A DNA stretch of 64,000 nt from Rebecca billardiae RCC1528 (GCA_965240325.2 OZ251227.1:558001-622000), one strand, 5' to 3'. Shown: positions 36,270-61,288, numbered from the stretch's first letter. Notes: generated by a model not told the origin, from the letters alone. Made by a program: numbers and translations.

Positions 36270-39200
36270 TCAGGTGATATGTGCCCCGGTATGGCGTGTC
36301 GGCCTCAAGGCCGGCGGCAGGGTTCTGTTGCCCGGAGGGTTCGCTGGCTCACCAGCGGCGAGGGCCGGGGCGTCCGGCTGCTTGCGCTTGCGGGCTGGGG
36401 CCGGCACTGGTGCCACCCCTCCGCGTGTGCCGGCCTGCATGTATGGCTGCTGCCCAAGGTCCGCCTCGGCGGGCTGCTCCAGGGTGGGCTGTGCCTGCAC
36501 GCCGGGTGCGCGCGAAGCGTCGTCTCGCTGGTGAGGAGCTGCAGTGGCGCCTGCTCCGCGCGTGCGGCGCTGGCACAGCCTGGCAGACTTGCGCAGGGGC
36601 TGGGCCTCAGGCACCGCAGGCGTCGGGGGTCTGGGCTGGTCAGGAGCGGGGGCGCCAGGCCAGAGAGGCTGCTGCAGGGTATCGGAATCCGGGCTGCGCC
36701 GTTTGGCCGGCGGGCCACGCCCCACAGCGGGGGGGTCGCCACGCGGCGCGACTGGTGGTGCTTGCGCGCCGGCGCTGCTGCTGGCACCTCCCGGGCTACA
36801 CCCCGGGGGGTGTCCAAGCGGGGGGCCGCGTGCCACCGGTGACTGGGGGCTGCCTGTGAAGCCCCTGTGCATAGGGCGCTTGCCGGTGCCTGCAGCAGTG
36901 CTGGGAGGAGGCAGTGCAGAGCTGTCTGGCAACCGCCGCTGCCCATCACCAGCACCTGTGCCATGGTCCTCAGAGCAGTCGTTTGGCCGGTCCCTGGGCT
37001 GTTTGCCGCGCCGATTGCTTGTGGGGCAGAGCTCCCCGTGCTCGAGCCCCGGTCGGCTCGGCAGCGGCAGCACAGGCTGGTAGTGCCCGGTGCCATCAAA
37101 GTACACTGCTGCAAGAGTTGGGTCACGCGCAAGGAGGCGTTCGCGTACCGACTGTTGCTGGCGCGGGTCAGCTGGAGCACCTGCAGGGCCCCCCTGTGGG
37201 TGTTGCCAGCGTTGGGGGTCCGTATACACTGGGTTGTTCATGCTGGACCACCGCGGCACGTGCCTATACAGCGTGCACGCCACCAGGTGCCCGACTGCAT
37301 CCGAGCTCTCTGGCCTGCCTGCTGTCCCATCAGCAGGGGCAGTCTGGCTGGCGCGCGGCTGGAACACTGCGATGTCACGCCCCATGACGGCCGCAACCGC
37401 TGGTATCATGACAGTGGGCCAGTACCTCGACGCCCCACCGGCGGCGAGCCTGCCATCGGCCCCGTAGCTCGCTGCAGCCCTGAGCGGCGCGGCGAACTCG
37501 TGCAGGGTTGGCTGGGCACCCTGCCCATGGTACGTGGCCCTATAGCTGTCAGACATGCTGATTGCCTCCAGTCCATCAGCATCCACGAGCCCCAGTTGAA
37601 GCCGGTGTGTCCGTGAGAGATGTGCTGTGCCGAGCACCCAGTCCACAGCAGCTGCCCTGAGGAAGCGGACTGCCTGGTAGGCTGCGGTGCAGGGGCCCAC
37701 TGCAGCAGCACGTTCCTCGACATAGCCCATGGCTGCCAACAGGAGGCAGTCCCCATGCATGCAAGTAGGGTACACAGCATGCCCCACTGCTGCCAGCAGC
37801 TCAGTGGCCGCCCCGCGCCGCTGTGGCTGGACAGCAACGTAGGCGGGCATAGGTGGCAGCTGCACTGCCGGCTGCCGGTCTGCAGTAGGGTGCTGAGCGT
37901 GGCCGGCAGCCACATCGTCGATTGGGGGGCCAGCAGCGCGAGGGGTGGAGCCTGCTGCTGCTGCCAACCGCCGCTGCTGGGCAGGGGGCCCACTCACACC
38001 GTTATCATCCTGGTGTGCCAGGGCGTCTGCATCGGGCGAGCGGGGCCGCCGCCTGCTGCCACGCTGTGTGCCGTGCAGCGCAGCGCCAGCCAGGCCAGCG
38101 TGCGCTGCTGCTGGCGGCTCAGCTGCTGCGCCCTCCTGCACCGGGCCCAGCAGCTGTGCAGGCAGGGGGTGGCTCGCCTCTGCTGGAGCAAGGCCAGGCC
38201 CCAACGCAGCGGGCGCCCGCGCATCGCTGGCGGGGGCATCTGCAGCCGGTGGGGCAGCTGCTGCGCCTGTGGCCGGCTGCTGTTGCAGCAGCTCATTGGG
38301 GGCTGGCGAGTCTTCAGCAGGTGGGTCTGGCTCTTCCACCTCAGCCGCAGGGGCGGGCTCCGCCTGGCTGGCAGCCGCCCGCCCTTGCTTATGGAGGAGG
38401 GCCCAGTACTTATCCAAGTCATACGTCTTGGCATATGCCGAGCTGAGGCTCAGCGCCCTGCGCTTGTCGTGGATTTTGCTGGCGGCCAGGGCCAAGGGAT
38501 TGTGGATCATCCCCCTGGCGTACTGCACCGGCTGGCTGCCAGGCTGCTGGTGGGCAGCCAGTGCTTGCTTCACAGCAGTGACAGTGGCCTCAGTCACCTT
38601 GCCAGCATAGTAGAAGGGGTGAAGCGTCGCCTGGACCGCAAGTCGGGTGGCTTCGAGCTGTGGGATGGCGCCATTCGAGGCCTTGCGTATCGCAGCTCCC
38701 ACCCTGTCCTCAGCGTCCCGCTGTGCGTGTGCGTGCGGGCACTGATGGAAGACGTGGTGCACGCTATCCGGCCCTGGGTTTGGGTCCCCCGCCTTCAGGC
38801 AGAATAGGCACTCTGTGCCCAGGGCATAGGTCGCCCGCGAGCTGGTGCACCGTCGCCGGGCACCAGCCAGGGCCGGTGTGGCTGCCACAGCATCCGCATT
38901 GTAAACCAGTGCACCGACCGCGCAGCGCAGCACAAACTTACTGATGCGCTCGCGGCACCACTGGTTCTGAAGCGAGTGTGTGGACTCGCGGACATCGCAT
39001 GGGAGCGGGGTACCGCCCTGGTGGTCGGGTGCCTGGTCACTGTCAGGGCCAGCCAGTTTGAGCCTGTACTTCGCTGCTGCAGCAGGCGTGGCAGCATGTG
39101 CCTCCAGCGCAGCCCTGCGCGCCCTGTCCATGACGCGGGTGCGGACCTGGTTTGGGCAGGATGGTAGCAACGTGGCAGAGCCGTGCTCCATCAGTGACAC

Positions 39201-42200
39201 TCTGTACGGCAGCCAGACCATCGGCCCCAGCGCGAACGATGCCTGCTGGTCACCCCTGGCGACCTGCTTGCTGGCCCAATCAGCACACAGGTTGCAGACC
39301 GTACGGAGCGCAGCTTCGCGAGGGGTGCCTGGGGCATGTCCGAGCACTATGCGCAGCAGCGCTTCGCATTGGGCAGAGCTCACGCAGAAGGCATTGTCGC
39401 GGGCCGACCACCATGGGGCCAGGGTGTTGCCAACCAGGCGGTCTAGTTCCGCATGACCTGCCTGTTGGTGGCGAAACGCCCACTGGTGACCCGACGCCGG
39501 CGGGACGCAGATGTCCAGGAGCCGGAGGAGGCGCACCATGTGGGGGCTGCCAGAGAGGAGCTTGGCTGCGGTGCCAGTGCCCTGGCGGGGAGCAGACTCT
39601 CCCGGGGCTGTCAAGTCCGGTCGGGCGCGGAGGGTGTGGTGCAGGGCAGTATCGCAGTCCCACCCTATGTGGGCGTGCAGCACTCCAATAGTGGAGAGCA
39701 CCTTCACTCCCAGGGTGGCAGCGGCAATCTCAGAGTTCTGGGCCGACTGCTCGCCGGGGTACGTGGCAGTGAAGATGGTGATGGCGTGGCGCTCGCCGCC
39801 GGGTGTGAGGGGTAGCGCATATGCCACAGCAGCTGCCCCCTGGCCCCTGCCTGGGACGTAGGAGCCATCCACTCCGGCCATCAGCCTGTCTGTGTCGGCC
39901 TGCAGGCCGCGCACTGGCAGCCTGCCATCCGTAGGGATTTCCCGTTCGTGGGCTGCAGCCCGGTCCGCAGGGCCCAGGTGCCCGGTGAGCAGAAAGTTTT
40001 CCGGGGCGGTGAGCCAGTTGTCAACTAGCCCATCCAGCAAGGCATGGGCCAGGCGACCGCACATCCACTCCTGCGCGGGGTCGTATGCACGGAGGGCCCT
40101 CCTGCCGTCTGCTGTGAAGAGAGAGAGGACAGCTGCGGCTGCTCCCCCATTGGTGGCGCGTATCATCTGCGCGGCGGAGGTCCCACCATCATGCAGGATG
40201 CTCTCCTCCAGCATGCTCGTGTGGGCATGGCCCGGCAGGTTGGGGCCAGCCCTGGGCACTGCCATCTCGATCGTGGCACCCACAGTCATGTCGAGGATGG
40301 CGTTGAGCCGGGCAGTCCGGCTGCTGCGCTTCCGCCGAGACAGCCTATTGGCGTACGTATCCATGATGTGCTCGACACACGAGCCGCACGCCTCCCGGAG
40401 AGTGAGGAGCGCGAGTTCACGGTAGGTGGCTGGCGCCCACCGCGCAGCCCCTGCTGGGCAGGTGTTCAGCGCGCGCAGCCCACCCTCGACGAACGGGGGG
40501 TACGCTGCCGGGGCAAACCCAGGCGAGTGCAGGCAGGCATGCCACTCGCCGAGGGCACTCCGGGCCAAGTGGCCATCCGCCGCCAGCGAGTTCGCCGCCT
40601 TCAGCAGAGTGGTCACCTTCTGCCCAGCATCTCTGGCCTGGGGATCCTCTGGGCCAATGCCCCACGTCTTGGCGGGGCCGCACGCTGCGATGCGCGCGGA
40701 CGCGTGCGGCAGCCCAACACGCTGCCACACAGGGCGCAGGATCGTGGTGCGCATGCTGCGCAGCTCGTCTTTGGTGAGCTTGCTGGCACTGAGCTTGTAG
40801 TCCAGTGTGGACACCACATCATGCTGGAGGAGGGTCCCTGTCATCACAGTATGGCAACAGGGGTCCATGGCCGCCACCCCCACTCGCCACGCAGCTTTCT
40901 GGAGGCGCTCAGCCACTTTCCGAGAGTGCGCCCCCCAGGCCAACTCCATGTTGAGGTGGTATCCGAGGTACGCAAACGATTCGCGGTGCGCCGGGTCCAG
41001 GGTGGGGACGGTGGCCACCGCCTGGCCGGCCCGGGGGAACAGAGGGGCTGCTGGGCCAGCCGGCTGGCGCGCGCGCCCGTCGCGCGGGGCGCGCGCCGGC
41101 CTGTACGCGTGCACACACTTGGCGTGATTGAGAACCATGCCATGCGCAGCGAGGAACTTATGGAGGGCCTCGAGCTGGGCAGTGTTCTCCGCCGCAGTGG
41201 CGGCCACCAGGGCCAAGTCATCCATATACCCTTGCACTTGGATGCAGGCTGTCGGGGGGGCTCTCTGCGGGAGGCGGGCAGTGGCATCTAGCTGGAACGT
41301 GTATCCGGTGGCGGACGTGGCTGTGAACCACTGGATGAACATGTTCATGAACAGGCAGAACTTGATGGGGCTCAGCGGGCAGCCTTGCTTGCATCCCTTC
41401 CGGATGGGCACCGGGTGTGTAAGGCCATGTGGGGTTCTAGTGACGGCTGTGGACCCTTCGTCCAGCCGATCGAGGCTGGCGATGAGCTGCGGCGGGAACC
41501 CGTGAAGGGCCAGGGCCTGCCTGAGGGACGAGATGGGCACGCTGTCGTATGCCTTGGCAATGTCGCACGCTGTGATGTGCAGCTCGCGGTTGTGCCGTTT
41601 GGCATGTGCGATGGCGGCAGTGAGCGCGGCCACGTGCAGGTCACCTTGCCCGCCAGCGCGCGACGCGGCCTGCTCGGGCCGGAGCAGCCCCAGCCTGTCG
41701 CAGACGTGCTGTATCTGGTTGGCCCGGTGGGCCGCAGCAATCTTGTATATCACGCTCTGCAGCGCGATCCCCCGATAGTTGCTGAGGGCGAGGGCATCGC
41801 CCTTCTTGTAGAAGTACACAATCTCTGACTGGGTGATGTGTGCAGGGAGGGGAGAGGCGGAGTGCAGGATAGTGTTGATGCAGTTGACCAACACTGTCCT
41901 CAGCGCGGGCTGTGCCTCTAGTATCAGTTTGAGGCTGCAGATTTGCACCTTATCCAGCCCGGGGGCCCCGTTGGACTTGGCCCTGCCCAGGATACGCTTG
42001 AGGTCCTCGGCGCGCATGGGTGCAGTGACAGCCCTCACTAGCTCTGGGGTCCACCTGTCCCTGATCGGCCTCCATATGGCGTCGTCCTCATACGGGTGGG
42101 GCCCTGGGGTGCGTTCTGCCGGCTGACCGATGTTCGAGGCAGTGTAGGCTGCAGCTAGCTCCTTTATCCGTGCAGGGTCGTCTGTGACAACTGCTCTGCC

Positions 42201-44178
42201 AGTGGCGGGGTCGGTGGTGCGGAGGAGGGTGAGCTCGAAGCCAGATGGCCTATCCCTGGGCAGGAGCTCCTTCCGCAAGTGGTGAGTACCTTTCCGGTGC
42301 ATCTCACGGGTGAGCTTGGCATAGCGCTCCTTGATTCGAGCGGTCTCAAATCTGTGCTGGACACGCTCGAAGGCCATGAGGCAAGTTGTGCATATCTGTT
42401 TAAGGTCGGCCAGCCACAAGGCGATCTCGCGCTGGCTCAGCTGCCACAGCGCGTACAGGTTAGGGACACCCGCCTGACCTGGCGGGGCGGTGGCCCCACC
42501 CGGCAGGGGCACCCCCATGTTTCGCTGTGCCATGGGTTGAGCGGCGCGCTCCCCCCATATGTGCTCATGAGCGCGGACTGCCCTCCTGCTGTTAGGCATG
42601 GCCAGCGAGCGGATCATCTTCCCCCGCTGTGCTGCAGTGGTGAGGCCTTCAAGGCACTCGGTGTGTCTGTGGGCCCTGCGCAGCTGCAGGATGCGAGTGA
42701 CGGTGGCCACCATTCCCCTATACACTCTGTGCATGGTCAGGTGGGACTGTGCCCAGGGGTCCACTGCCCTGTTCTGGGGCCCGCCCACTGGGCGCAGCGG
42801 CTCTTTGGGGGCCTGTGCTGGGTCAGCCGCCCCCACTCCGTCCACAGCGAGGCTGGTAAGCTCCGCCAACGTGTCCGGGAGGGCCTGCTCTGCCGCCGCG
42901 CGTGCTGCTGCATCCATGTGCTCGTGGAAGTCAAGGAGGTTATTGTCATTGTACAGCGGGTGCATGGTGCCACTGTCGTCAGCTATTCTGGCCAGGGTTT
43001 GAGCTGCTGGGCCGCTGAGGGCCTGTACCACCTTGGCCCGATGCTGTGGGTCAGAGGCGCTGAAATAAAACCGGTGGGGCTGCCATCGCACATGCACTTT
43101 TGGCCGTCGTATGTGGCCTAGCTTGTCGACAGGTATGTCTGCGATCATGAAGAAGTGGGTGCTCCGACCCTCGCCGGTGGTCTGGAGCGGGATGCCGAGC
43201 GCTGCAGCAGGGTCACTGTGCCTGACGTGGCAGGCCAGGTCAGCTCTGTTCGAGAGCATGTACGAAATGCGCGAGGCGGTATTGCCACACACGTGGGTGT
43301 ACTCCGTAGCGGGGTCAAACGTGCCCGGCGGCTTCATGTTGTGCATGCCTGTCAATGACTCCATCATATTCCGGAACGTGCATGGGGACTTGTTCTGGTG
43401 CCTCCGGCGAGGGTCCAGGGCGACAGCCTCCCCCTGCGCCCAGACTGCGTTTGCATCACCTGCTGCCATCCGCAGGGCATCTGTGCGCCCAGTGACCATG
43501 TCCGAGTGCATTTCCAGAGTGTGGTGCAGGGCAGGGAGCACCGCGCTGCGCATGGCTGGGTTGCATGGGATATAGAAGCACGTGAGTTGGATGTGGTAGA
43601 CATCTCCTGCTGCTGTGGCGAATATCAGGGTGCCCATCAGGAGGTGGCCTGCCACTGACTTGTGCATGGTGCCCCCCTGCACTTGGATGTCCAGCGCAGC
43701 CATGGGCCGCGCAGGGTCCCGGCGGACAGCAATCGCTACCCCTTTGCCTGAGCTCTTATGGTGCGCTGGGAGGGGGTCGTGGTATGTGGTGTACCCCTGT
43801 AGGATGTCTGGTGTGGCCAGGGCTGACCGCAGGTTTGTCTCCTGGAGCAGTACTATGTCCCATTGGTGGTCATCCAGCAGGGTCTGGAGCATGGCCCTCC
43901 TGGAGAGCTTGGCTATGCCCCCCACGTTGACTGACGCAATGGAGAGGCGCTGCCTGCAGCCACCAGGGCCTGGGTTCTTGGCTTCGCCTTGGCGCTGGCC
44001 ATTGTCTGGGTCGCCGACACGCTGGTTGGAAGTGGCGTCCTCTGCTCGGGTGGGTTCACAGCACTGATGCCCTGCCCTGCCTGCTGCCCCGCTATGCCCG
44101 GCTGCATCATAGCCGTGCTTCACACGCAGGTGCCACTTGTGCTCGGGGGGGACATGCATGAGCATGGTAATCAGAAAC
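36270..44178 (-). CDS. LINE polyprotein, main part: APE endonuclease, reverse transcriptase, RNase H, CCHC zinc finger, OTU-like protease
   Basis: SVNVGG, IVLLQET, AGDAN; NYRGIAL, DIAKAYDSV, GCKQGCPLSP, YMDDL, YLG; VDGS..NSE..WDC..NLCAD; CLFC..HVFHQC; HGDCLL..GHY. Confidence 0.93.
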
Positions 44179-44484
44179 GACCAAGGACCCCAGTTTCTCC
44201 CGGGTAACAATTCCTCTAACTATTACTCACCCCCGTCGCGCCCGTGAAAAGTGTTACGGGCCGAGCGTAGCAGTAACATGTAACACTCTCACGCCGGACT
44301 CACGCCCGGACTGCGGGTGTCTGACCGAGCCGCACTCGCCGCCCGTGACTAAACGCCCTGGCTGAGCACACTGTCAGCCATCACTTTCACTTGAGACCGT
44401 CGGTGGCGTCGGTCTCGGATTCTCGCGGCCCGTTGCCGGCCAGTCCGGGTCCGGGTCCGGGGCCGGGCGGGTGGCGCTGGGCCC

Positions 44485-44647
44485 CGGGAGGAGGCCCCCT
44501 GTAACAGCTGTAACACCGTAACACGTAACAAGTCCGGCGCGGCGAGTCCGGGAGCCGACCGGTCCAGGTCCGGGGCGGGCGGGCCGCCCGGGCCGGGCCC
44601 GGGAGGAGGCCCCCTGTAACAGCTGTAACACCGTAACACGTAACACA
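44485..44647 (-). repeat. Left GTAAC array (2 units)
   Basis: GGGAGGAGGCCCCCTGTAACAGCTGTAACACCGTAACACGTAAC twice. Confidence 0.9.
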
Positions 44648-44877
44648 ATGGCGCCGCTCGGCCGCGGCCCGTCGGCCCGGTGAAAAAATGGCGGCGGGGC
44701 GCGCGGCGCGCAGCGTCGCGCTCGGTGCGCTCGGCGGGGCTCGAGGAACGACTGCGGACGGGCGAGCGCGCACGGGCGCGAGCACGAGTCGCGTCGCCCG
44801 CGCCCCTCCCCGAGCGACCTGCCGCCGCGTCTCGCGACGATGGCGCAGTGGCCGCTCGTCCGTGGCCGCGTGAAAAA

Positions 44878-46131
44878 ATGGCGGCGGGGCGCGCGGCGCG
44901 CAGCGTCGCGCGCCCAGGCGAGGCGTGCACGCACGAGGTTGTGTTCCTGGCAAGTGGCTCGCAGCGTACGTTCGGCGGCCGGCTGCACGTGCCGAGCAGC
45001 CGCCTGCGCGAGCTCGATGCACTCGTGGCCGCGCAGCACTTGGTGCACGGCGCGCGCGCGCCCATGGTGGTCGAGGCGCTCGGCGCGCGCGCGCGCTTCG
45101 TCGTCGATGTGGACTGCGCCTTCAGCACCGCGCCCTCCCCCTCGGACGTGGCCGCACTGCTCGTCGGCCTCTACCGCGTCGCGGAGGAGCATCTGCCCGT
45201 GCCCGTTCCCGTGGCTGGGCGCGTCGTGTACGTCTCGGCGCGCGCGCCCAGCCCCGCGACCGCCGCCGGCTCGGCGCCGGGCGTGCGCCGAGCCGGGATT
45301 CACGCGACATGGAACGACTCGGCCATCGTCTCGGCCGCTGAGGCGGCGCGCATCGCGCGCGTCCTGCTCGACTGGGCGCGCTCGCAGCCGCGGCCGCCGT
45401 GCTGGCACAAGCTCGAGATCGACTGCAGCATCTACGGGGCGGGCCTGCGCCTGCCGTTCACGGCCAAGTCGGACGGCGGCCCGCCCTACCTGCCGGCAGC
45501 CGTCGTCGCCGCCGACGAGCACGGCGCCGTGCGCTGCGCGTGGCTCGACGCGCTGCCTGCGCAGCACGCGCTGCGGCGGCTCGCGGCGGATGGCGCGCGC
45601 TGGCTCTCTCGCGCGCGGCTGCGCACCGAGCTGGTCGAGTGGAGCGCGCCGCCGCCCGCGCCCGGCCGACCGGCTGTGCCGGCGACGAGCGCCGCCGGTC
45701 GCGATGCGGCGGCCGGCGCGCGGCGCGCGGCGCTGGTCGGCTGGCTCAACGAGCAGCTGCACGCGCACGCACGAGTCTCTGGCTCGGCCGAGCGCTGGCC
45801 GCGCATCGTGCAGGTGTTTGCTGGGAGCACGGCGCACGGCCCGGTCGCGACGTGCTCGACCGCCAGCAGGTGGTGCGAGTGCAAGGGCGCCGAGCACGCG
45901 CGACGCACCGTCTTCTACTTCGCCAAGTCCGACGGCCTCGACCTGTGCTGCGCCGACGAGGCGTGCGTGCCAGCGCGCGGCGCCGGGTACGCGCGCGCCG
46001 TCTGCCTGCGCAGCATGCTCTTCTGCGCGGGCGGCGGCCGCACGGGCGCGCCGCCCCGCATCGCCGAGTTTGCCTCGCGCTTCCACGCCGCGTTCGCCAG
46101 CGGCCGTGCCGCGATGGGCCCGGCGCGTTGA
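44878..46131 (+). CDS. Archaeo-eukaryotic primase (PrimPol/NCLDV type) with C-terminal UL52-like zinc finger, 417 aa from the likely ATG
   Basis: Motif I RFVVDVD, motif II GIHATW, motif III IDCSIYGAGLRLPFTAK; Zn finger SRWCECKGAEH..TVFY..C.D..C. Confidence 0.85.
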   Translation: MAAGRAARSVARPGEACTHEVVFLASGSQRTFGGRLHVPSSRLRELDALVAAQHLVHGARAPMVVEALGARARFVVDVDCAFSTAPSPSDVAALLVGLYRVAEEHLPVPVPVAGRVVYVSARAPSPATAAGSAPGVRRAGIHATWNDSAIVSAAEAARIARVLLDWARSQPRPPCWHKLEIDCSIYGAGLRLPFTAKSDGGPPYLPAAVVAADEHGAVRCAWLDALPAQHALRRLAADGARWLSRARLRTELVEWSAPPPAPGRPAVPATSAAGRDAAAGARRAALVGWLNEQLHAHARVSGSAERWPRIVQVFAGSTAHGPVATCSTASRWCECKGAEHARRTVFYFAKSDGLDLCCADEACVPARGAGYARAVCLRSMLFCAGGGRTGAPPRIAEFASRFHAAFASGRAAMGPAR

Positions 46132-46660
46132 CGACGCGGCGGCCGTGCAGCGCGCATGCGCCCGCGCGCCGTCGCCGTCGCCGCCGCCGCCGCCCCGCCG
46201 CCGCCGCCGCCGCCGCCGCGCCCACCTCGCGCCGTCGGCCGACGGGCTCGGCAAACGAGGCGGCGTGCAAACAAGGACTCGGCGCTCGCGCCGGGGTCGG
46301 TGCAGCGCGACGCCACGCGAACCGCCGCGGTGCTCGCGCCCGTGCGCGCTCGCCCGTCCGCGTGCGCTCCTCGAGCCCCGCCGAGCGCACCGAGCGCGAC
46401 GCTGCGCGCCGCGCGCCCCGCCGCCATTTTTTCACGCGGCCACGGACGAGCGTCCACACCGCCATCGTCGCGAGACGCGGCGGCAGGTCGCTCGGGGAGG
46501 GGCGCGGGCGACGCGACTCGTGCTCGCGCCCGTGCGCGCTCGCCCGTCCGCGGGCGTTCCTCGAGCCCCGCCGAGCGCACCGAGCGCGACGCTGCGCGCC
46601 GCGCGCCCCGCCGCCATTTTTTCACCGGGCCGACGACGGGCCATGGCCGAGCGGCGCCAT

Positions 46661-47890
46661 TGTGTTACGTGTTACGGTGTTACAGCTGTAACAGGGGGGC
46701 CTCCTCCCGGGCCCGGCGGCCCGCCCGCCCCGGACCTGGACCGGTCGGCTCCCGGACTCGCCGCGCCGGACTTGTTACGTGTTACGGTGTTACAGCTGTT
46801 ACAGGGGGCCTCCTCCCGGGCCCGGCGGCCCGCCCGCCCCGGCCCCGGACCGGCCGGCTCCCGGACTCTGCGCCGCGCCGGACTTGTTACGTGTTACGGG
46901 CCCCGTGTTACAGCTGTTACAGGGGGCCTCCTCCCGGGCCCGGCGCGGCCGGCCCGCGCCGGCAGCCCCGGACTCGGACCGGAGCCGGACTAGTGTTACG
47001 TGTTACGGTGTTACAGCTGTTACAGGGGGCCTCTGACTGGCTCCTCCCGGGCCGCGAGGCCCGGGCCCGCCGGCAGCCCCGGACCCGGATGACGCGCCGG
47101 ACTTGTTACGTGTTACGGTGAGTTACAGCTGTTACTTACAGGGGGCCTCCCGTCCCGGGCCCGGCGCGGCCGGCCCGCCGGCAGCCCCGGACTCCGGGAC
47201 GAGCCGGACTTGTTACGTGTTACGGTGTTACAGCTGTTACAGGGGGCCTCCTCCCGGGCCGCGAGGCCCGGGCCCGCCGGCAGCCCCGGACCCGGACGCG
47301 CCGGACTTGTTACGTGTTACGGTGTTACAGGCTACAGCTGTTACAGGGGGCCTCCTCCCGGGCCCGGCGCGGCCGCCCGGCCGGCCCGCCGGCAGCCCCG
47401 GACTCCGGGACGAGCCGGACTTGTTACGTGTTACGGTGTTACAGCTGTTACAGGGGGCCTCCTCCCGGGCCGCGAGGCCCGGGCCCGCCGGCAGCCCCGG
47501 ACCCGGACGCGCCGGACTTGTTACGTGTTACGGTGTTACAGCTGTTACCGAGCCTGGGGCCTCCTCCCGGGCCCGGCGCGGCCGGCCCGCCGGCAGCCCC
47601 GGACTCCGGGACGAGCCGGACTTGTTACGTGTTACGGTGTTACAGCTGTTACAGGGGGCCTCCTCCCGGGCCGCGAGGCCCGGGCCCGCCGGCAGCCCCG
47701 GACCCGGACGCGCCGGACTTGTTACGTGTTACGGTGTTACAGCTGTTACAGGGGGCCTCCTCCCGGGCCCGGCGCGGCCCGGCCCGCCGGCAGCCCCGGA
47801 CTCCGGGACGAGCCGGACTTGTTACGTGTTACGGTGTTACAGCTGTTACAGGGGGCCTCCTCCCGGGCCGCGAGGCCCGGGCCCGCCGGC
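46661..47890 (+). repeat. Right GTTAC tandem array (~12 units of ~100 bp, alternating A/B spacers)
   Basis: Core TTGTTACGTGTTACGGTGTTACAGCTGTTACAGGGGGCCTCCTCCCGGG. Confidence 0.92.
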
Positions 47891-48153
47891 CCAGGAGTGC
47901 CGCCGCGGACCGACCGCGCCGCTGACTCAGGACGCCGACGGCGTCACGGCGGCGATGCGGCGCGCCGCCGCGCGGCCGCCGCCGCGCGCGCGCGCCTGAC
48001 GCGCGCGCTGTCGAGCCGCAGTCCCTCGCGTGCCTGCGCTGGCGGGTGACCGGGGTGTTACCATCGCTACGGCCGACAGGCAGCCAAAAATCCCTATAGA
48101 AAACATTTCCCCTATGAAGGTAATATGGGTAGCAGAAACTCGGGTCCATACCC

Positions 48154-49756
48154 TCAGAAACAAGACCGCCTGCTTATGTGGCGCTTGCTGACGCCTGCGT
48201 CTGGCCGAGGCAGCACCTCTGCAGGCACTCCGCCCGGCAACTGTCCTGCCATTGCACTGCCCCTGGTGGCGGCAGTGGTGCCGCTGGGGCGCCCTGCCCC
48301 ACTGCCACTGGGACTGGGGCAGGGCCAAGCACCTGCGCCTGCGAGTTTGCTTACATGCTCTGCTCCTGGGCAGTCCGACCCATGTTGTGCTATGCACCAG
48401 CATCAGCTCACGCGGGTGGGCCCTGCGTGCCTGTCGCCAGCCTGGGCAGGGAGACTCACCCCGTGCAAGCCGGGCCACCTCTGACCAGTAGTTGCGGCGG
48501 GCTGGCACCGCCGCTGCCTCCTCTCGACCGCGCGCAGTGCCAGTGCAGCGCTGCGTGGCAGACAGCTTCACGTCACAGCAATCATCATCACAGACGACCA
48601 CTGCTGTGGCGGGGGGCAAAGCGGGGCGACTGCGCAGTGCCAACAGCAGTAGCCAGACAAGCACCTCAGCCATTACTCCTGCTGCTGCCAGTGCTGGCCG
48701 TGGTCGCACGACGACGGTGAACGTCAGCCACACTGGGGGGGGCAAGGAGGCCAGGCCCAGCCCAGCTGCCAAGCAGCCAGCAGCCGGCATCCGTGTGATC
48801 TGCATCAACACCAGCAGTGCTGCCACCACAGCGTGGGCCAGCCATACGATACTGGCAGCGTGGTCGAAAGCGATGAGGCGAGACGAAGTGCCCACCTCGG
48901 CATTTACCTTCTCCGCCGCCTGGTCGCCAGCGAGCACGGCGGCCGTGGAGGCCATGTCATGCGGCCGCATGCGGCCCGTTTCCTCGGCCATCGCCTCTGC
49001 CGCCCTTCGCATCCTGTCATCTGGGAGAGTAATGACGGCGTTGCCTTTGGCGCAGCGCACGTGCGCGCTCAGCAATCCCGGCTCGGCCGATGCCTGCGCC
49101 CCCGCGTCAGGCGTCTTGGCCCAAGCACCAGCACCGGCCCGCTGCGCGCGCGCCCCGCGGCGCCGTTTACCCAACGGAGTATGTGGCGGGTCGTTCTCCT
49201 CAGCGTCACTCATGTTGGCATCCGCGCCCACACCATCGACGTCGCGCGGCCGCCGAGTCTCCATCTGCCGTCGCAGCAGCGTGTCACGGTGGGCCGCGCT
49301 GGAGCAGCCGCCGTCCTGCTCTGACAAGCCTGCGGGACGGCAAGCCTCGCCGCAAGACTTGCCCAACCGATAGGAACCGTAGGCAGACGAACCGGTGTCA
49401 CCACCATCCGCAAACGCTTCAGTCGCGAGACAATAGTATCTCCCCCATTTTGTAGTGCGTGCATCAGGCTCACGGTTCACCTTGACCGCACCTGGAGGAG
49501 ACCTCACCTGTAATCCAGCACTTCGGCGGTGCACTCGGGACGAATTCCGGGCGCCCACCCGCACCCAACCGTTACCATTCTTACCCGCATCTTCGTCTAG
49601 CACTACCGCTGCAGCCCGAGCGCCGGAGACTAGTAGCGCGGGCAGGGACGCCGGCGTCGAGGGTAGCGGTCGGGCGCTCTTGGGCCCTCGGGCCAGCCCC
49701 GGGCCCACCTGCATCACAGGCCACCTGCCTCCCTGTTGTCTGCCCCGGACTAGCAC
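48154..49756 (-). CDS. LINE polyprotein, N-terminal part displaced by the insertion (hydrophobic leader)
   Basis: ..KQAVLFL joins ITMLMHVPP.. in frame once the element and one TSD are removed. Confidence 0.75.
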
Positions 49757-53325: not shown

Positions 53326-55116
53326 TCATTCGTCGCTTGTTGCCAAGCTGCTCGCTGGCCAGTACACCGCGCTCAGCCGCGACGCCTCCGCGCGCACCTC
53401 TTCGAGCGTCGACAGCTTGGGGTCGAGGAGAAGGAAGTGCTCGTGCGGGCCGATGCGGCGGCCCACTAGCCAGCCCTCGGCCGCACGCACGCACACCTCC
53501 TCCTCTTCGCTCGGCGCGGCGCAACCCGTCCGGCCAGCGCCGCCGGCCGTGTTGCGCGAGAGGTGCGCGTGCGTGTGCTGCAGCAGTGTGCGCAGAGGGC
53601 GGGAGAGCGAGGGCGTGGGCCCGAGGAGCCCCGGCGAGCAGCGCAGGCTATGCGTCACGCTCTCGAGCGAGATGAACGGCGGCGTGTGCGCCGCGTCCGC
53701 CTGCGCCGCCGCCAGCCTGCCCGCCTGCTCGACGAGCGCGCGCTCGAGAGGCTTGAGCGTCTCGGCCGCCGCCTCGGCCGCGCCGCGGTACCACGCAGGG
53801 TCTTGCCAGCTCGGGTCTGCCTCGTCGAGAAGGAGAGCGAGCGTGAGCTGGCGCAGCCGGTAGACGACGAGCCGCGCGTTCGTCCGAGAGCCACGCGAGG
53901 AGTCCGCGCCCACGTGAGCCCCCACGCCGCTGTGAGCATCGGCTGCGCCATCGGCCGCCGCCACCGCGGGCTCTGTGTCGCAGAGCTGCACGCGCGGCGC
54001 CGCGACGGTGGGCCGCGCGGCCGCCTCCTCGGCTGAGCCGGGAGGCAGCCCGACGACGAAGCGGCCAGTGCAGTGCGGCTCGGCGGCGAGGATGCCGACG
54101 AGCTGCGTGCAAAGCGCCTCAAGCCCCGCACCGCCGACCTCCTCCGCGCCGGGGCTGACGGCGCCGTCCGCGCTGTCCGTCCCGCCACTGCCGCCAGCGC
54201 CGCTCCCGGCGGCAGCGGCGCCGCCAGCGTCGGACGCGCCACCGAGTGCGCTCGCGCCGTTCGGCGTGTGCGGTGAGGGCGAGGCGGTCGGCGCGCGTCC
54301 GAGCGCGCCACCGAGCGCGCGCCCGCCACCGACTCGGCGGCTCGGCGCGCTCGTCACGCGGGCCGTCGACGCGCGCGCGAGCAGCGAGAGCAGCGCGCAC
54401 AGCGTGTGCGCATCCGCCGCGCCCAGCCGCGCGGTGGCGACCGCGCGCTCAGAGAGCAGCATGGCCGCGCCGCGCACGGGCGGGAGGAGGGCGTCGAGCT
54501 CGGCCATCGCGGCGTGCGCGCTGAGGTGCAGCGCAGGGGGCAGTGCGAGGAAGCTCAGCGCGCAGAACGCGTCCACCAGCGCCCCGGACTCGACGGAGAA
54601 GGCGGAGGCGTGCGCCTCGAGCAGCGCGCAGAGCGGCGGCAGCGCGGTGCACACCGCTTCGCGCAGCGCGCGCGCGGGCGGCGCGGCGTCGAGGCTGCCA
54701 ACGAAGAGGCGTAGGGTGGCGCAGGTGAGTGCCAGGCGCTCGCGAAGTAGCCCGTCGGGCAAGTCCTCCTCCCGTGCCTCTGCCTCGCCCCCGCGCGAGC
54801 GTGCGCGCTTTGCATGCCGCGTCACCAGGCACGCCCACGTGCCCGAGCCCTCCTCAGCCTCGACGAGGGTGTACCGGTGCAGATGCGTGTGCACTGCGTG
54901 GCACGGCTGCGCCGCGAACGTGCGCGCGAAGTCGAGCATTCCCTCGCACAGGCCCACCACCGCCAGCTGCCGCTCGAGCGCGACGCCTTCCGGAAAGCAG
55001 CACACCACCTTCCTCTCAGCGTCCTCCTCGCCGCCCAGGTCGCGGCGGAAGACGACGAGGCAGTCGAGCTCCGACGGGGTGGCAGCAGGCGGCGGGCTCA
55101 GGAGCGAGAGCAGCAT
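53326..55116 (-). CDS. CCZ1: Vacuolar fusion protein Ccz1 (Mon1-Ccz1 GEF subunit)
   Basis: KVVCCFP..VGLCEGMLDFARTF..HT..EAEEG..W (first longin domain); C-terminal EVCVR..GWLVGRR..L.EV. Confidence 0.85.
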   Translation of the reverse strand: MLLSLLSPPPAATPSELDCLVVFRRDLGGEEDAERKVVCCFPEGVALERQLAVVGLCEGMLDFARTFAAQPCHAVHTHLHRYTLVEAEEGSGTWACLVTRHAKRARSRGGEAEAREEDLPDGLLRERLALTCATLRLFVGSLDAAPPARALREAVCTALPPLCALLEAHASAFSVESGALVDAFCALSFLALPPALHLSAHAAMAELDALLPPVRGAAMLLSERAVATARLGAADAHTLCALLSLLARASTARVTSAPSRRVGGGRALGGALGRAPTASPSPHTPNGASALGGASDAGGAAAAGSGAGGSGGTDSADGAVSPGAEEVGGAGLEALCTQLVGILAAEPHCTGRFVVGLPPGSAEEAAARPTVAAPRVQLCDTEPAVAAADGAADAHSGVGAHVGADSSRGSRTNARLVVYRLRQLTLALLLDEADPSWQDPAWYRGAAEAAAETLKPLERALVEQAGRLAAAQADAAHTPPFISLESVTHSLRCSPGLLGPTPSLSRPLRTLLQHTHAHLSRNTAGGAGRTGCAAPSEEEEVCVRAAEGWLVGRRIGPHEHFLLLDPKLSTLEEVRAEASRLSAVYWPASSLATSDE

Positions 55117-55303
55117 GGCCGGGCGCCGGACGAGCCCTCGCACGTGTACTTTGAGCCGCTTGGCACTCACCGCGGATCGCGTGTCGTCGCTCCCTCCATC
55201 CTGGGCGCCGTTCCGGGTGGACTTGAACCGCGCGGGCCGGAGCCACCGCATCTGATCCCGCTACACAGCGGAAAGCGCGTTGCTGCTCGTCGAGCGCACG
55301 ACG

Positions 55304-56065: not shown

Positions 56066-56882
56066 GCTGCTTCACACCGGGACGATCCTCTCCCCAGTCC
56101 TGCCTGGCGCAAGGGCTTTGATCGGTCTGCTTTCCCACGCACTCGGGGTGATGCGCCTGGGTCGCGAGTGGGTGAATGGTTTTTGACAAGGACTCGAGCG
56201 AGCGCGGAGCGACGCGCCGCCGTGGACTACTGCCTCCTGGGCGTGGCCCATGGCATGCCGCATGCCAGACCGTGCGGGCCGACTGTTGCGGCACCTCAGC
56301 CCACGCGGCCAGCACGGTGGCGTGCAGCCGTCACGCCCCGGGGCGAAGTCCACCGGTGGTGGCGACCGTCCGATGGCTGCTGCCACGCAGGGTCGGCCCC
56401 CGGTCCCGAGGCGCCGCGCCCGCGGAATCATCGTCGGCTTTATGTTCAGTACTGACGGACCTGAGTCCTGACGATGATCCGTGATGACCGTTGATCGTCA
56501 CTGGGCGCGATCTGCGGCTGAGACTGAGGCTACTAAGTTCGTCGTCTTTCAAGAACTAATAAGTCGACTGCTCGCGCAATGACATGATGATGTGATAACT
56601 TGACACTTTGATGTCAACTCACCGGGTATGGACCCGAGTTTCTGCTACCCATATTACCTTCATAGGGGAAATGTTTTCTATAGGGATTTTTGGCCCTGTC
56701 GGCCGTAGCGATGGTAACACCCCGGTCACCCGCCCGCGCAGGCACGCGAGGGACTGCGGCTCGACAGCGCGCGCGTCAGGCGCGCGCGCGCGGCGGCGGC
56801 CGCGCGGCGGCGCGCCGCATCGCCGCCGTGACGCCGTCGGCGTCCTGAGTCAGCGGCGTGGTCGGTCCGCGGCGGCACTCCT

Positions 56883-58284
56883 GGGCCGGCGGGCCCGGGC
56901 CTCGCGGCCCGGGAGGAGGCCCCCTGTAACAGCTGTAACACCGTAACACGTAACAAGTCCGGCTCGTCCCGGAGTCCGGGGCTGCCGGCGGGCCGGCCGC
57001 GCCGGGCCCGGGAGGAGGCCCCCTGTAACAGCTGTAACACCGTAACACGTAACAAGTCCGGCGCGTCCGGGTCCGGGGCTGCCGGCGGGCCCGGGCCTCG
57101 CGGCCCGGGAGGAGGCCCCCTGTAACAGCTGTAACACCTGTAACACGTAACAAGTCCGGCTCGTCCCGGAGTCCGGGGCTGCCGGCGGGCCGGCCGCGCC
57201 GGGCCCGGGAGGAGGCCCCCTGTAACAGCTGTAACACCTGTAACACGTAACAAGTCCGGCGCGTCCGGGTCCGGGGCTGCCGGCGGGCCCGGGCCTCGCG
57301 GCCCGGGAGGAGGCCCCCTGTAACAGCTGTAACACCTGTAACACGTAACAAGTCCGGCTCGTCCCGGAGTCCGGGGCTGCCGGCGGGCCGGCCGCGCCGG
57401 GCCCGGGAGGAGGCCCCCTGTAACAGCTGTAACACCTGTAACACGTAACAAGTCCGGCGCGTCCGGGTCCGGGGCTGCCGGCGGGCCCGGGCCTCGCGGC
57501 CCGGGAGGAGGCCCCCTGTAACAGCTGTAACACCTGTAACACGTAACAAGTCCGGCTCGTCCCGGAGTCCGGGGCTGCCGGCGGGCCGGCCGCGCCGGGC
57601 CCGGGAGGAGGCCCCCTGTAACAGCTGTAACACCTGTAACACGTAACAAGTCCGGCGCGTCCGGGTCCGGGGCTGCCGGCGGGCCCGGGCCTCGCGGCCC
57701 GGGAGGAGGCCCCCTGTAACAGCTGTAACACCTGTAACACGTAACAAGTCCGGCTCGTCCCGGAGTCCGGGGCTGCCGGCGGGCCGGCCGCGCCGGGCCC
57801 GGGAGGAGGCCCCCTTAGTAACAGCTGTAACACCTGTAACACGTAACAAGTCCGGCGCGTCCGGGTCCGGGGCTGCCGGCGGGCCCGGGCCTCGCGGCCC
57901 GGGAGGAGGCCCCCTGTAACAGCTGTAACACCGTAACACGTAACACTAACAAGTCCGGCTCGTCCGAGTCCGGGGCTGCCGGCGGGCCCGGGCCGCGCTG
58001 CCGGGCCCGCGGGAGGAGGCCCCCTGTAACAGACAGCTGTAACACCGTAACATTCGACGTAACAAGTCCGGCGCGGCGAGTCCGGGAGCCGGCCGGGCCG
58101 GGGCCGGGGCGGGCGGGCCGCCGGGCCCGGGAGGAGGCCCCCTGTAACAGCTGTAACACCGTAACACGTAACAAGTCCGGCGCGGCGAGTCCGGGAGCCG
58201 ACCGGTCCAGGTCCGGGGCGGGCGGGCCGCCGGGCCCGGGAGGAGGCCCCCTGTTACAGCTGTAACACCGTAACACGTAACACA
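56883..58284 (-). repeat. GTAAC tandem array of copy 2 (~14 units)
   Basis: Same unit as 46661-47890, reverse strand. Confidence 0.92.
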
Positions 58285-58813
58285 ATGGCGCCGCTCGGCC
58301 ATGGCCCGTCGTCGGCCCGGTGAAAAAATGGCGGCGGGGCGCGCGGCGCGCAGCGTCGCGCTCGGTGCGCTCGGCGGGGCTCGAGGAACGCCCGCGGACG
58401 GGCGAGCGCGCACGGGCGCGAGCACGAGTCGCGTCGCCCGCGCCCCTCCCCGAGCGACCTGCCGCCGCGTCTCGCGACGATGGCGGTGTGGACGCTCGTC
58501 CGTGGCCGCGTGAAAAAATGGCGGCGGGGCGCGCGGCGCGCAGCGTCGCGCTCGGTGCGCTCGGCGGGGCTCGAGGAGCGCACGCGGACGGGCGAGCGCG
58601 CACGGGCGCGAGCACCGCGGCGGTTCGCGTGGCGTCGCGCTGCACCGACCCCGGCGCGAGCGCCGAGTCCTTGTTTGCACGCCGCCTCGTTTGCCGAGCC
58701 CGTCGGCCGACGGCGCGAGGTGGGCGCGGCGGCGGCGGCGGCGGCGGCGGGGCGGCGGCGGCGGCGACGGCGGCGGCGTGCGGGCGCATGCGCGCTGCAC
58801 GGCCGCCGCGTCG

Positions 58814-60067
58814 TCAACGCGCCGGGCCCATCGCGGCACGGCCGCTGGCGAACGCGGCGTGGAAGCGCGAGGCAAACTCGGCGCTGCGTGGCGGCGCGCC
58901 CGCGCGGCCGCCGCCCGCGCAGAAGAGCATGCTGCGCAGGCAGACGGCGCGCGCGCGCCCGGCGCCGCGCGCTGCCACGCACGCCTCGTCGGCGCAGCAC
59001 AGGTCGAGGCCGTCGGACTTGGCGAAGTAGAAGACGGTGCGTCGCGCGTGCTCGGCGCCCTTGCACTCGCACCACCTGCTGGCGGTCGAGCACGTCGCGA
59101 CCGGGCCGTGCGCCGTGCTCCCAGCAAACACCTGCACGATGCGCGGCCAGCGCTCGGCCGAGCCAGAGACTCGTGCGTGCGCGTGCAGCTGCTCGTTGAG
59201 CCAGCCGACCAGCGCCGCGCGCCGCGCGCCGGCCGCCGCATCGCGACCGGCGGCGCTCGTCGCCGGCACAGCCGGTCGGCCGGGCGCGGGCGGCGGCGCG
59301 CTCCACTCGACCAGCTCGGTGCGCAGCCGCGCGCGAGAGAGCCAGCGCGCGCCATCCGCCGCGAGCCGCCGCAGCGCGTGCTGCGCAGGCAGCGCGTCGA
59401 GCCACGCGCAGCGCACGGCGCCGTGCTCGTCGGCGGCGACGACGGCTGCCGGCAGGTAGGGCGGGCCGCCGTCCGACTTGGCCGTGAACGGCAGGCGCAG
59501 GCCCGCCCCGTAGATGCTGCAGTCGATCTCGAGCTTGTGCCAGCACGGCGGCCGCGGCTGCGAGCGCGCCCAGTCGTGCAGGACGCGCGCGATGCGCGCC
59601 GCCTCAGCGGCCGAGATGATGGCCGAGTCGTTCCATGTCGCGTGAATCCCGGCTCGGCGCACGCCCGGCGCCGAGCCGGCGGCGGTCGCGGGGCTGGGCG
59701 CGCGCGCCGAGACGTACACGACGCGCCCAGCCACGGGAACGGGCACGGGCAGATGCTCCTCCGCGACGCGGTAGAGGCCGACGAGCAGTGCGGCCACGTC
59801 CGAGGGGGAGGGCGCGGTGCTGAAGGCGCAGTCCACATCGACGACGAAGCGCGCGCGCGCGCCGAGCGCCTCGACCACCATGGGCGCGCGCGCGCCGTGC
59901 ACCAAGTGCTGCGCGGCCACGAGTGCATCGAGCTCGCGCAGGCGGCTGCTCGGCACGTGCAGCCGGCCGCCGAACGTACGCTGCGAGCCACTTGCCAGGA
60001 ACACAACCTCGTGCGTGCACGCCTCGCCTGGGCGCGCGACGCTGCGCGCCGCGCGCCCCGCCGCCAT
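58814..60067 (-). CDS. Archaeo-eukaryotic primase (PrimPol/NCLDV type) with UL52-like zinc finger, copy 2
   Basis: Same length and motifs as 44878-46131; 6 amino-acid differences, none in catalytic motifs. Confidence 0.85.
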   Translation of the reverse strand: MAAGRAARSVARPGEACTHEVVFLASGSQRTFGGRLHVPSSRLRELDALVAAQHLVHGARAPMVVEALGARARFVVDVDCAFSTAPSPSDVAALLVGLYRVAEEHLPVPVPVAGRVVYVSARAPSPATAAGSAPGVRRAGIHATWNDSAIISAAEAARIARVLHDWARSQPRPPCWHKLEIDCSIYGAGLRLPFTAKSDGGPPYLPAAVVAADEHGAVRCAWLDALPAQHALRRLAADGARWLSRARLRTELVEWSAPPPAPGRPAVPATSAAGRDAAAGARRAALVGWLNEQLHAHARVSGSAERWPRIVQVFAGSTAHGPVATCSTASRWCECKGAEHARRTVFYFAKSDGLDLCCADEACVAARGAGRARAVCLRSMLFCAGGGRAGAPPRSAEFASRFHAAFASGRAAMGPAR

Positions 60068-60297
60068 TTTTTCACGCGGCCACGGACGAGCGGCCACTGC
60101 GCCATCGTCGCGAGACGCGGCGGCAGGTCGCTCGGGGAGGGGCGCGGGCGACGCGACTCGTGCTCGCGCCCGTGCGCGCTCGCCCGTCCGCAGTCGTTCC
60201 TCGAGCCCCGCCGAGCGCACCGAGCGCGACGCTGCGCGCCGCGCGCCCCGCCGCCATTTTTTCACCGGGCCGACGGGCCGCGGCCGAGCGGCGCCAT

Positions 60298-60465
60298 TGT
60301 GTTACGTGTTACGGTGTTACAGCTGTTACAGGGGGCCTCCTCCCGACCGGGCCCGGCCCGGGCGGCCCGCCCGCCCCGGACCTGGACCGGTCGGCTCCCG
60401 GACTCGCCGCGCCGGACTTGTTACGTGTTACGGTGTTACAGCTGTTACAGGGGGCCTCCTCCCGG
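60298..60465 (+). repeat. Short GTTAC array of copy 2 (2 units)
   Basis: Direct reading. Confidence 0.9.
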
Positions 60466-61288
60466 GGCCCAGCGAAACCCGCCCGGCCCCGGCCCCGGAC
60501 CCGGACTGGCCGGCAACGGGCCGCGAGAATCCGAGACCGACGGTCTCAAGCCTTGAAAGTGATGGCTGACAGTGTGCTCAGCCAGGGTTTAGTCAGGCGG
60601 CGTGGCTCGGTCAGACACCCGCAGTCCGGGTGAGTCCGGCGTGAGAGTGTTACATGTTACTGCTACGCTCGGCCCGTAACACTTTTCACGGGCGCGACGG
60701 GGGTGAGTAATAGTTAGAGGAATTGTTACCCGGGAGAAACTGGGGTCCTTGGTCAACTCACCGCGCGACTGCTGTCGCTGATGAACAGAGGTACTGTAAG
60801 TAACAGCGGCACAGACAGAGTGAACAGACGGTCCCCGCACCCGGCCCCGGGGCCAGGCGACGCTGCAACCGCGGCAGGCGTGCGCCTGATGACAAACAAC
60901 GTGAAGCAGCAAATTCACGTCGCATGACCAACCGTCACCTCCACGCCCATGGCCGAGCACGATGGCCCACGATGCCAGGCGGGAGTAGTCAGTCAGCGAC
61001 GTCGCCCAGTGCAACGGCAGGCCGGGCGTGATGACGAGCGCGTTGGCAACCACTTGACCACGGCGTTGGCAGCTGGTGTGCTGCATGAGCGCGCCGGCGA
61101 CCCTCGAGTGCGCGCGAAGCCCGCACGGCATGTGCTCATCTGCGGCTCGCGTCTGTCGTCCACTTCCGCGGACACCCTTCTGTGACCACAGATGACATGA
61201 GCTCGCGACCTTGTTCCAACCCTATTTTGCTTTTGGGCACGACTTGAGTCCAGCAGCACGTCCGGGCTGTCTGTGCCACGCCGTTGCC

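Follow-up and report, generated by a model that had tools for sequence, protein, structure and literature searches.

To our knowledge, the eukaryotic transposons that carry replication proteins are large ones, for example the Polintons and Teratorn. Polintons/Mavericks and casposons combine terminal inverted repeats (TIRs) and target-site duplications (TSDs) with a replication protein of their own, and they encode a family B polymerase and an integrase within 15 to 20 kb or more. Teratorn, an autonomous element of fish, is a piggyBac transposon fused to an alloherpesvirus, with its own transposase and approximately 90 genes in 180 kb. In bacteria, the E. coli protein IEE, which belongs to the archaeo-eukaryotic primases (AEPs), promotes the excision of IS629 and carries out end-joining. 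In Chlamydomonas reinhardtii, the element DNA-1_cRei spans 18.4 kb and holds four genes (TET/JBP CMD1, a kinase, and others) between 67-bp TIRs, and a study of Chlamydomonas has reported that genes passed between a giant virus and DNA transposons. In this study, we describe two copies (A and B) of an element of about 4 kb in a 64,000-nucleotide stretch of the genome of Rebecca billardiae RCC1528 (OZ251227.1:558001-622000; hereafter the window), each with TIRs and TSDs and with a putative giant-virus-type primase as its only recognizable gene.

An original prediction made on the window had proposed two near-identical elements, each with its own perfect 8-bp TSD and with imperfect 20-bp TIRs, and all of these features were recovered at the same limits. 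In BLASTN comparisons, copies A and B share 96.8% identity over 3.7 kb (44179-47890 paired with 60754-57081 at 96.8%, and 46670-48153 with 58052-56624), and the similarity ends exactly at 44179/60754 on one side and at 48153/56624 on the other. The two copies are spaced 8.5 kb apart and their flanks differ. The octamers next to the ends are perfect direct repeats that are different for copy A (TCAGAAAC) and copy B (AACTCACC); because the boundaries were set by the inter-copy alignment, the chance of two 8/8 matches is about (4^-8)^2 = 2e-10. Both copies have the same imperfect 20-bp TIRs, in which 15 of 20 positions match, with a core matching at 13 of 14; this 14-nt core has four occurrences in the window, one at each element end and none elsewhere, with 0.03 expected. 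The outermost six bases of the two ends are mostly unlike, with the TIR following inside them, and the terminal bases are GAC/GGG. Two independent and recent insertions of one TIR/TSD element are confirmed. A composite transposon comprising A and B as one unit was considered and rejected, as the outer flanks are unlike. The elements are also richer in G and C (73-77% for both, and 0.73-0.76 along copy A) than the flanks and the window as a whole (about 0.65).

The primase gene is an open reading frame (ORF) of 417 codons that is intact in both copies, with 411 of 417 amino acids identical, and the motifs and the finger residues that had been predicted for it were located. Its GC content by codon position (0.76/0.63/0.92) is as in the host ORFs, and the overlapping frames carry no such pattern. 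It is a real gene with a codon usage that is now host-like, and a chance ORF is excluded by the third-position value (0.92) and by homology. Copies A and B differ within the ORF at eight nucleotides (0.64%), which amount to six non-synonymous codons and one synonymous codon; the motifs are unaffected, and four of the differences are located C-terminal to the finger. The unique non-coding parts differ by 0.6-0.8%. The copies are therefore of recent origin, and their divergence, which is small and alike in coding and non-coding parts, has been neutral. Neutral drift is usual among transposon copies and is uninformative on the active lineage. The other ORFs of the element hold no Pfam domain, which bears out the claim of a single recognizable gene, and the domain scan of the element ORFs yielded no capsid, packaging, helicase, polymerase, or integrase gene.

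Several lines of comparison support the assignment of the predicted protein to the AEP primases of the clade formed by the nucleocytoplasmic large DNA viruses (NCLDVs), herpesviruses, and PrimPol, with viral rather than cellular proteins as its nearest kin. The three AEP motifs occur in the order I, II, III, as DVD (amino acids 77-79), GIH (140-142), and D182..Y186..LRLP, and the putative finger ligands C333, H340, C357/358, and C363 recur throughout the family. Every full-length relative, at 26-40% identity, retains the DxD, H, D, and Cys-His-Cys-Cys residues, and such conservation across deep divergence is a better sign of selection on the family than an open frame. Direct searches of the window protein against Pfam, PDB sequences, PHROGs, and NCBIfam gave no AEP match, and weak, sub-threshold matches to DUF7739 and PcrP were disregarded. 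The link to the Pfam family AEP_C962R (PF23162) is a transitive one, by way of relatives identified with phmmer and hhalign. The window protein matches the metagenomic protein P0006 in phmmer (E 8.7e-5), and P0006 scores 43 bits on PF23162 against a cut-off of 23; P0005, P0006, and P0009 all pass this family. In hhalign, the alga-like group aligns with the viral-contig pair P0006/P0009 at 97.5% probability (E 5.5e-12) over 174 columns that include motifs I-III. The Pfam UL52 match is weak (E 0.1) and confined to P0006/P0009.

The predicted structure points in the same direction. In the AlphaFold2 model, the core reaches predicted local distance difference test (pLDDT) values of 70-92 and the C-terminus is poor. 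Foldseek recovered the AEP fold, as the original prediction had anticipated, with the N-terminal Prim/Pol domain of AsfvPrimPol (E 1e-6, target template-modeling score 0.56-0.60) and herpes simplex virus (HSV) UL52 as top PDB matches, and with a probability of 1.0 to the AsfvPrimPol Prim/Pol domain, HSV UL52, and giant-virus primases. The top BFVD models are stand-alone giant-virus primases of 400-500 amino acids, including the "C962R-like AEP" of medusavirus, Feldmannia virus, and pandoravirus, and cellular PrimPol is absent from the top 50 structural matches. Together with phmmer and hhalign, these results upheld the viral leaning that had been proposed for the protein. The fold and motifs I-III are shared with the stand-alone or C962R-like NCLDV primases, with UL52/UL70, and with PrimPol, and a putative Cys-His-Cys-Cys finger is present at the C-terminal side. 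The size is near that of the viral stand-alone forms of 400-500 amino acids, with no D5/SF3 (superfamily 3) helicase fusion. NCLDV primases reside in viral genomes, whereas the primase described here lies inside a 4-kb TIR/TSD element in host chromatin.

The DNA outside the ORF is not featureless: its inverted ends are long and imperfect, and it contains tandem arrays as well as inverted repeats in the interior. From either end, the layout runs from the 20-bp TIR through approximately 265 bp to clusters of the motif GTTAC, then to a 190-bp repeat, and finally to a 1.5-kb core with the ORF. In the segment of about 265 bp inside each TIR, the two ends are unlike except for a conserved CGTAGC..GTAACAC block, which lies at an equal distance (85-108 bp) from both ends. 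The inner approximately 460 bp of both sides form an inverted repeat, with arms that are 97-98% complementary and lie some 266 bp inward of the ends. The GTTAC motifs are grouped in clusters of four, spaced about 100 bp apart, with 2 clusters on the ORF-start side and, on the other side, 12 in copy A and 14 in copy B; since these last numbers differ, the array has changed in length after the two copies split. The 198-bp units of the copy B array at 57042-57935 are 100% identical to one another. GTTAC/GTAAC reaches 15-17 occurrences per kb in the elements versus 0.3 per kb outside, an enrichment of about 50-fold, and its orientation is mirrored, with GTAAC on the left side and GTTAC on the right. 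This mirror layout is as expected for subterminal transposase-binding sites, which the clusters are likely to be, judging from the pattern of motifs.

The 190-bp repeat, present in one to two units per side, carries an 18-nt A-tract motif that occurs four times per element and faces the ORF from both sides. The ATG of the ORF falls within this motif, where the inverted repeat has its inner edge. A match at 15 of 18 positions also lies beside a truncated primase relative from other samples (L004 485-502 and L006 331-348), which none of 200 shuffles equaled; as the pattern was spotted before its shuffle test, the result is suggestive only. Because the motif also accompanies a relative of approximately 41% protein identity (tblastn), gene and repeats appear to have traveled together for a long time, which hints that they form a long-standing unit and were not brought together by a recent accidental capture. 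In a comparison with one giant-virus promoter motif, that of punuivirus, a green-algal virus, the A-tract showed no resemblance. A (CCG)n microsatellite lies at 46162-46222, just 3' of the stop codon of the primase. Where the inner inverted repeat meets the array, an 18-nt perfect palindrome (46680-46697) contains the sole plus-strand TGTAA downstream of the ORF, which presumably could act as a polyadenylation signal if the host is Chlamydomonas-like.

Compared to previously described transposons, the element shares features with several superfamilies. In the curated Chlamydomonas transposable element catalogue, the families with 8-bp TSDs are hAT, Novosib, P, Kyakuja, Zisupton, and the unclassified DNA-1_cRei. 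The original prediction had favored MuDR or Merlin over hAT or P on the basis of the ends, a preference that finds no support in this list. TSDs are 9-11 bp in Mutator-like elements and 8-9 bp in Merlin. Because the outermost bases are unlike and the long subterminal inverted repeats contain satellites, the ends lean weakly to the Kyakuja/Zisupton (KDZ) type. The 8-bp TSD is shared with KDZ elements, but the inverted arms lie about 266 bp inside, the ends are GAC/GGG instead of GAG, and a transposase is absent. It is likewise shared with hAT, but the CAGGG-type ends of algal hAT families are not seen; the ends listed in Chlamydomonas are CAGGG for hAT/P and GAG for Kyakuja. Non-autonomous members of the 8-bp-TSD superfamilies (hAT, Novosib, P, and Kyakuja/Zisupton) similarly combine short TIRs with subterminal repeats and internal satellites, and none of the listed 8-bp-TSD families is an element of about 4 kb with a primase. 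That two insertions are found near one another would be compatible with local hopping.

Compared by description, the unclassified DNA-1_cRei resembles the element in its 8-bp TSD, in imperfect TIRs with partly unlike outermost bases, in having no recognizable transposase, and in its few copies. Its cargo genes are expressed and no primase has been reported among them. Like the element, Teratorn is a cut-and-paste transposon with a viral-type primase of the same broad clade, but it contains other viral replication genes and a transposase, while the element has 4 kb and no transposase. IEE, a polymerase with an AEP domain that acts on behalf of a transposable element by promoting excision and joining the ends, is the best functional analogy for an accessory role of the primase. 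It is a bacterial protein with a helicase fused to it, however, and its gene lies outside the insertion sequence; the likeness is one of function. The self-synthesizing transposons have polymerase and integrase genes, none of which is present in the element, and TSDs of other lengths. A relationship to Replitrons was rejected, as the Replitron paper describes no primase, TIRs, or 8-bp TSD. Searches of the literature and of the Chlamydomonas catalogue, though not of Repbase and Dfam, turned up no eukaryotic TIR/TSD element with a primase as its only recognizable gene, and the earlier impression of an unrecognized family agrees with the absence of a match to any family described there.

Relatives of the protein are few. 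A HMMER search of 1.84 billion representative proteins returned only six, and word-indexed protein searches added nothing beyond this set. Scans of IMG/VR and the Joint Genome Institute (JGI) metagenomes with protein patterns gave no match, nor did a metagenome scan with a 32-nt GTTAC cluster or a search of Rfam. P0006 and its near-twin P0009 lie on a 14-kb contig beside genes for an mRNA capping enzyme, a NUDIX protein, and TFIIS. The metagenomic contig that holds P0006, the nearest Pfam-positive primase relative (L002, 1-11230), has a GC content of 57%, which is unusually rich, and belongs to a giant virus or to an endogenous copy of such a virus. Among the relatives recovered in other datasets, one is full-length and intact (L001), one (L003) spans two frames and contains an intron-like GT..AG segment, and another (L009) also spans two frames. 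A single locus seen in three samples (L004, L006, and L007) retains the C-terminal half only, and a further locus seen in two sequencing runs (L005 and L008) is in three frames. AT-rich flanks (GC 0.42-0.49; L004 1-300 and 1530-1640, L006 1-200) surround the primase remnant, which has a GC content of 0.7-0.8, and because of these flanks the high GC content of the gene is not simply the background of that host.

The surrounding window is ordinary, GC-rich eukaryotic nuclear DNA, whose composition and gene content are suggestive of a GC-rich green alga and not of human DNA. Its host ORFs encode SRCR, mitochondrial carrier, DEAD-box helicase, Frag1/DRAM, glutathione S-transferase (GST), exostosin GT47, longin (CCZ1-like), and Ras proteins, the first six as gene fragments within 5840-33656. 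An integrated giant virus was rejected as an explanation of the locus, as the flanks are host genes and no viral hallmark genes are found in the window. The reading frame of a non-long-terminal-repeat (non-LTR) retrotransposon that spans copy A has a Cys-rich C-terminal part with no Pfam match, and it is interrupted once, by the insertion of copy A. Exact look-ups of ORFs of the window returned nothing, a search with a helicase ORF returned distant matches only, and peptides of the retrotransposon are missing from Chlamydomonas and Edaphochlamys data. No transposase was found in the element or among the ORFs scanned across the window. The positions of all features are collected in Table 1.

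Table 1. Coordinates of the two element copies, their parts, and neighboring reading frames (positions counted from the first nucleotide of the window)
Feature	Position	Strand	Remarks
Element copy A	44179-48153	+	3975 bp; bounds from inter-copy BLASTN alignment
Copy A left TSD, TCAGAAAC	44171-44178		partner 48154-48161
Copy A right TSD, TCAGAAAC	48154-48161
Copy A left TIR, 20 bp	44179-44198	+	15/20 complementary to 48134-48153
Copy A right TIR, 20 bp	48134-48153	-
Copy A inner inverted-repeat arm, left	44445-44911	+	two four-GTAAC clusters; 1.3 units of the 190-bp A-tract repeat
Copy A inner inverted-repeat arm, right	46394-46851	-	97-98% complementary to left arm
Copy A A-tract motifs	44676-44693, 44866-44883, 46422-46439, 46612-46629		four further sites in copy B
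Copy A primase ORF	44878-46131	+	417 amino acids plus stop; no intron
Copy A AEP core (predicted)	44923-45543		amino acids ~16-222
Copy A Cys-His-Cys-Cys finger (predicted)	45853-45966		amino acids 326-363
Copy A tandem array	46663-47890	+	period ~100/200 bp; 12 four-GTTAC clusters
Element copy B	56624-60754	-	4131 bp; opposite orientation to copy A; bounds from inter-copy BLASTN
Copy B TSD, AACTCACC	56616-56623		plus-strand letters; partner 60755-60762
Copy B TSD partner, AACTCACC	60755-60762
Copy B tandem array	56885-58282	-	GTTAC clusters; includes perfectly identical 198-bp units
Copy B inner inverted-repeat arm	58093-58551	+	partner 60034-60501
Copy B primase ORF	58814-60067	-	417 amino acids plus stop
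Copy B inner inverted-repeat arm, ORF-start side	60034-60501	-
Non-LTR retrotransposon reading frame	36273-49756	-	APE endonuclease and reverse transcriptase domains
Longin (CCZ1-like) ORF	53329-55251		between copies A and B
Ras-family ORF	63244-63999

We propose that the element is a non-autonomous class II (TIR) DNA transposon that is moved in trans and carries a giant-virus-type primase as cargo, and we assign this reading a probability of roughly 55%. Movement in trans is suggested by the TSDs, the TIRs, the mirrored subterminal repeats, and the two nearby insertions together with the missing transposase. At least two recent insertions would each have taken place through an 8-bp staggered cut of the target, and because of this cut at each insertion, a transposase, probably of the DDE type, would be encoded elsewhere and act in trans. 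Its likely binding sites would be the 20-bp ends, the CGTAGC..GTAACAC block, and the mirrored clusters of four GTTAC motifs. For the gene, an ancestry among the primases of giant viruses (Nucleocytoviricota) is the best reading. The primase might, though less probably than not, assist as an accessory factor in the DNA synthesis that goes with transposition, for example by filling in the 8-nt gaps, by repairing the donor site or copying it anew, or by priming on a copy that has been excised; otherwise it would be a mere passenger.

Several observations weigh against this proposal. Movement in trans is something that we infer, and neither a transposase nor an autonomous partner was found in the 64-kb window. 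The GTTAC arrays could represent a satellite expansion with no binding role. The window protein stays below any Pfam or PDB sequence threshold, and its model has a mean pLDDT of only 60, with values below 50 in the finger region. The 6:1 ratio of non-synonymous to synonymous differences reveals no purifying selection since the two copies split, and the open frame is itself weak evidence of function because DNA of 75% GC keeps other frames open here for 600-700 codons. Decay of the ORF, which the original prediction had named as a sign of passive capture, is seen in most relatives elsewhere, which are truncated or broken into two or three frames as passively decaying cargo would be, but not in the window, where both copies are intact.

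These last points bear on the alternative that the primase is a pure passenger with no role, captured in the manner of a Pack-TE (a transposable element that takes up host genes), the source being either giant-virus DNA that had integrated or a host gene of viral derivation. The absence of a selection signal between the copies and the decayed state of the relatives are what it predicts, and captured genes are frequent in green-algal DNA transposons. Yet the ORF starts inside an inverted repeat that belongs to the element itself, at its inner edge, the A-tract beside the distant relative suggests that gene and repeats have long been together, all catalytic and finger residues are kept, and no close host parent appeared among the 1.84 billion representative proteins; we consider this alternative possible but doubtful. 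The way in which the gene abuts one inverted end could also be read as the scar of an internal deletion, by which non-autonomous DNA transposons usually arise. In that case, the element would be the remnant of a larger autonomous one with a transposase or integrase and the primase, perhaps also with a helicase or polymerase, and its parent would be a virus-transposon fusion, for which Teratorn provides a precedent as a cut-and-paste transposon fused to a primase-bearing virus, or a new self-synthesizing transposon. Such an origin seems unlikely, as no longer relative turned up in the window, IMG/VR, or the JGI metagenomes, and, apart from the giant-virus-like contig, which has no features of a TIR element, no related contig exceeds 2.7 kb.

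The viral type of the primase raises the further idea of a giant-virus hitchhiker, that is, a satellite-like replicon that would use the GTTAC arrays and inverted repeats as an origin, be copied, with its own primase, during infection, and persist between infections as an integrated transposon. The dense, iteron-like arrays, the large inverted repeats, and an A-tract directly upstream of the start codon amid DNA of 75% GC would suit it. Nevertheless, capsid, packaging, helicase, and polymerase genes are absent, the codon usage is host-like, a scan of 2.9 million viral contigs gave no match, and the A-tract is unlike the punuivirus motif, so that we hold this origin to be very improbable. A broader reading, in which the element lineage keeps the primase-polymerase as a working module, either for "self-priming" on its own repeats or as a satellite replicon amplified during giant-virus infection, appears quite unlikely to us. 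As the two copies are rich in tandem repeats and just 8.5 kb apart, one may also ask whether they are mobile at all, or whether a host primase gene embedded in satellite DNA has undergone a local inverted segmental duplication. The sharp stop of the similarity at identical terminal sequences, the different perfect 8-bp duplication of each copy, and the interruption of the retrotransposon reading frame by copy A leave this with almost no probability.

Under the proposed reading of a primase-carrying transposon moved in trans, a cargo-carrying non-autonomous DNA transposon is itself a known kind of element, and what would be new is the primase that it contains. A 4-kb TIR element with a viral-type primase as its only recognizable gene would be the smallest such association, and it would be a case of gene flow from a giant virus to a host transposon, the reverse of the TET capture lately proposed in Chlamydomonas. 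The protein family, which is almost missing from public data, widens the known diversity of AEPs. If the primase serves the element, it would provide a parallel to the bacterial AEP protein IEE and would bear on how cut-and-paste elements could acquire replicative ability. Should the primase prove to be a working module or the element a satellite replicon, it would constitute a new link between DNA transposons and the Nucleocytoviricota.

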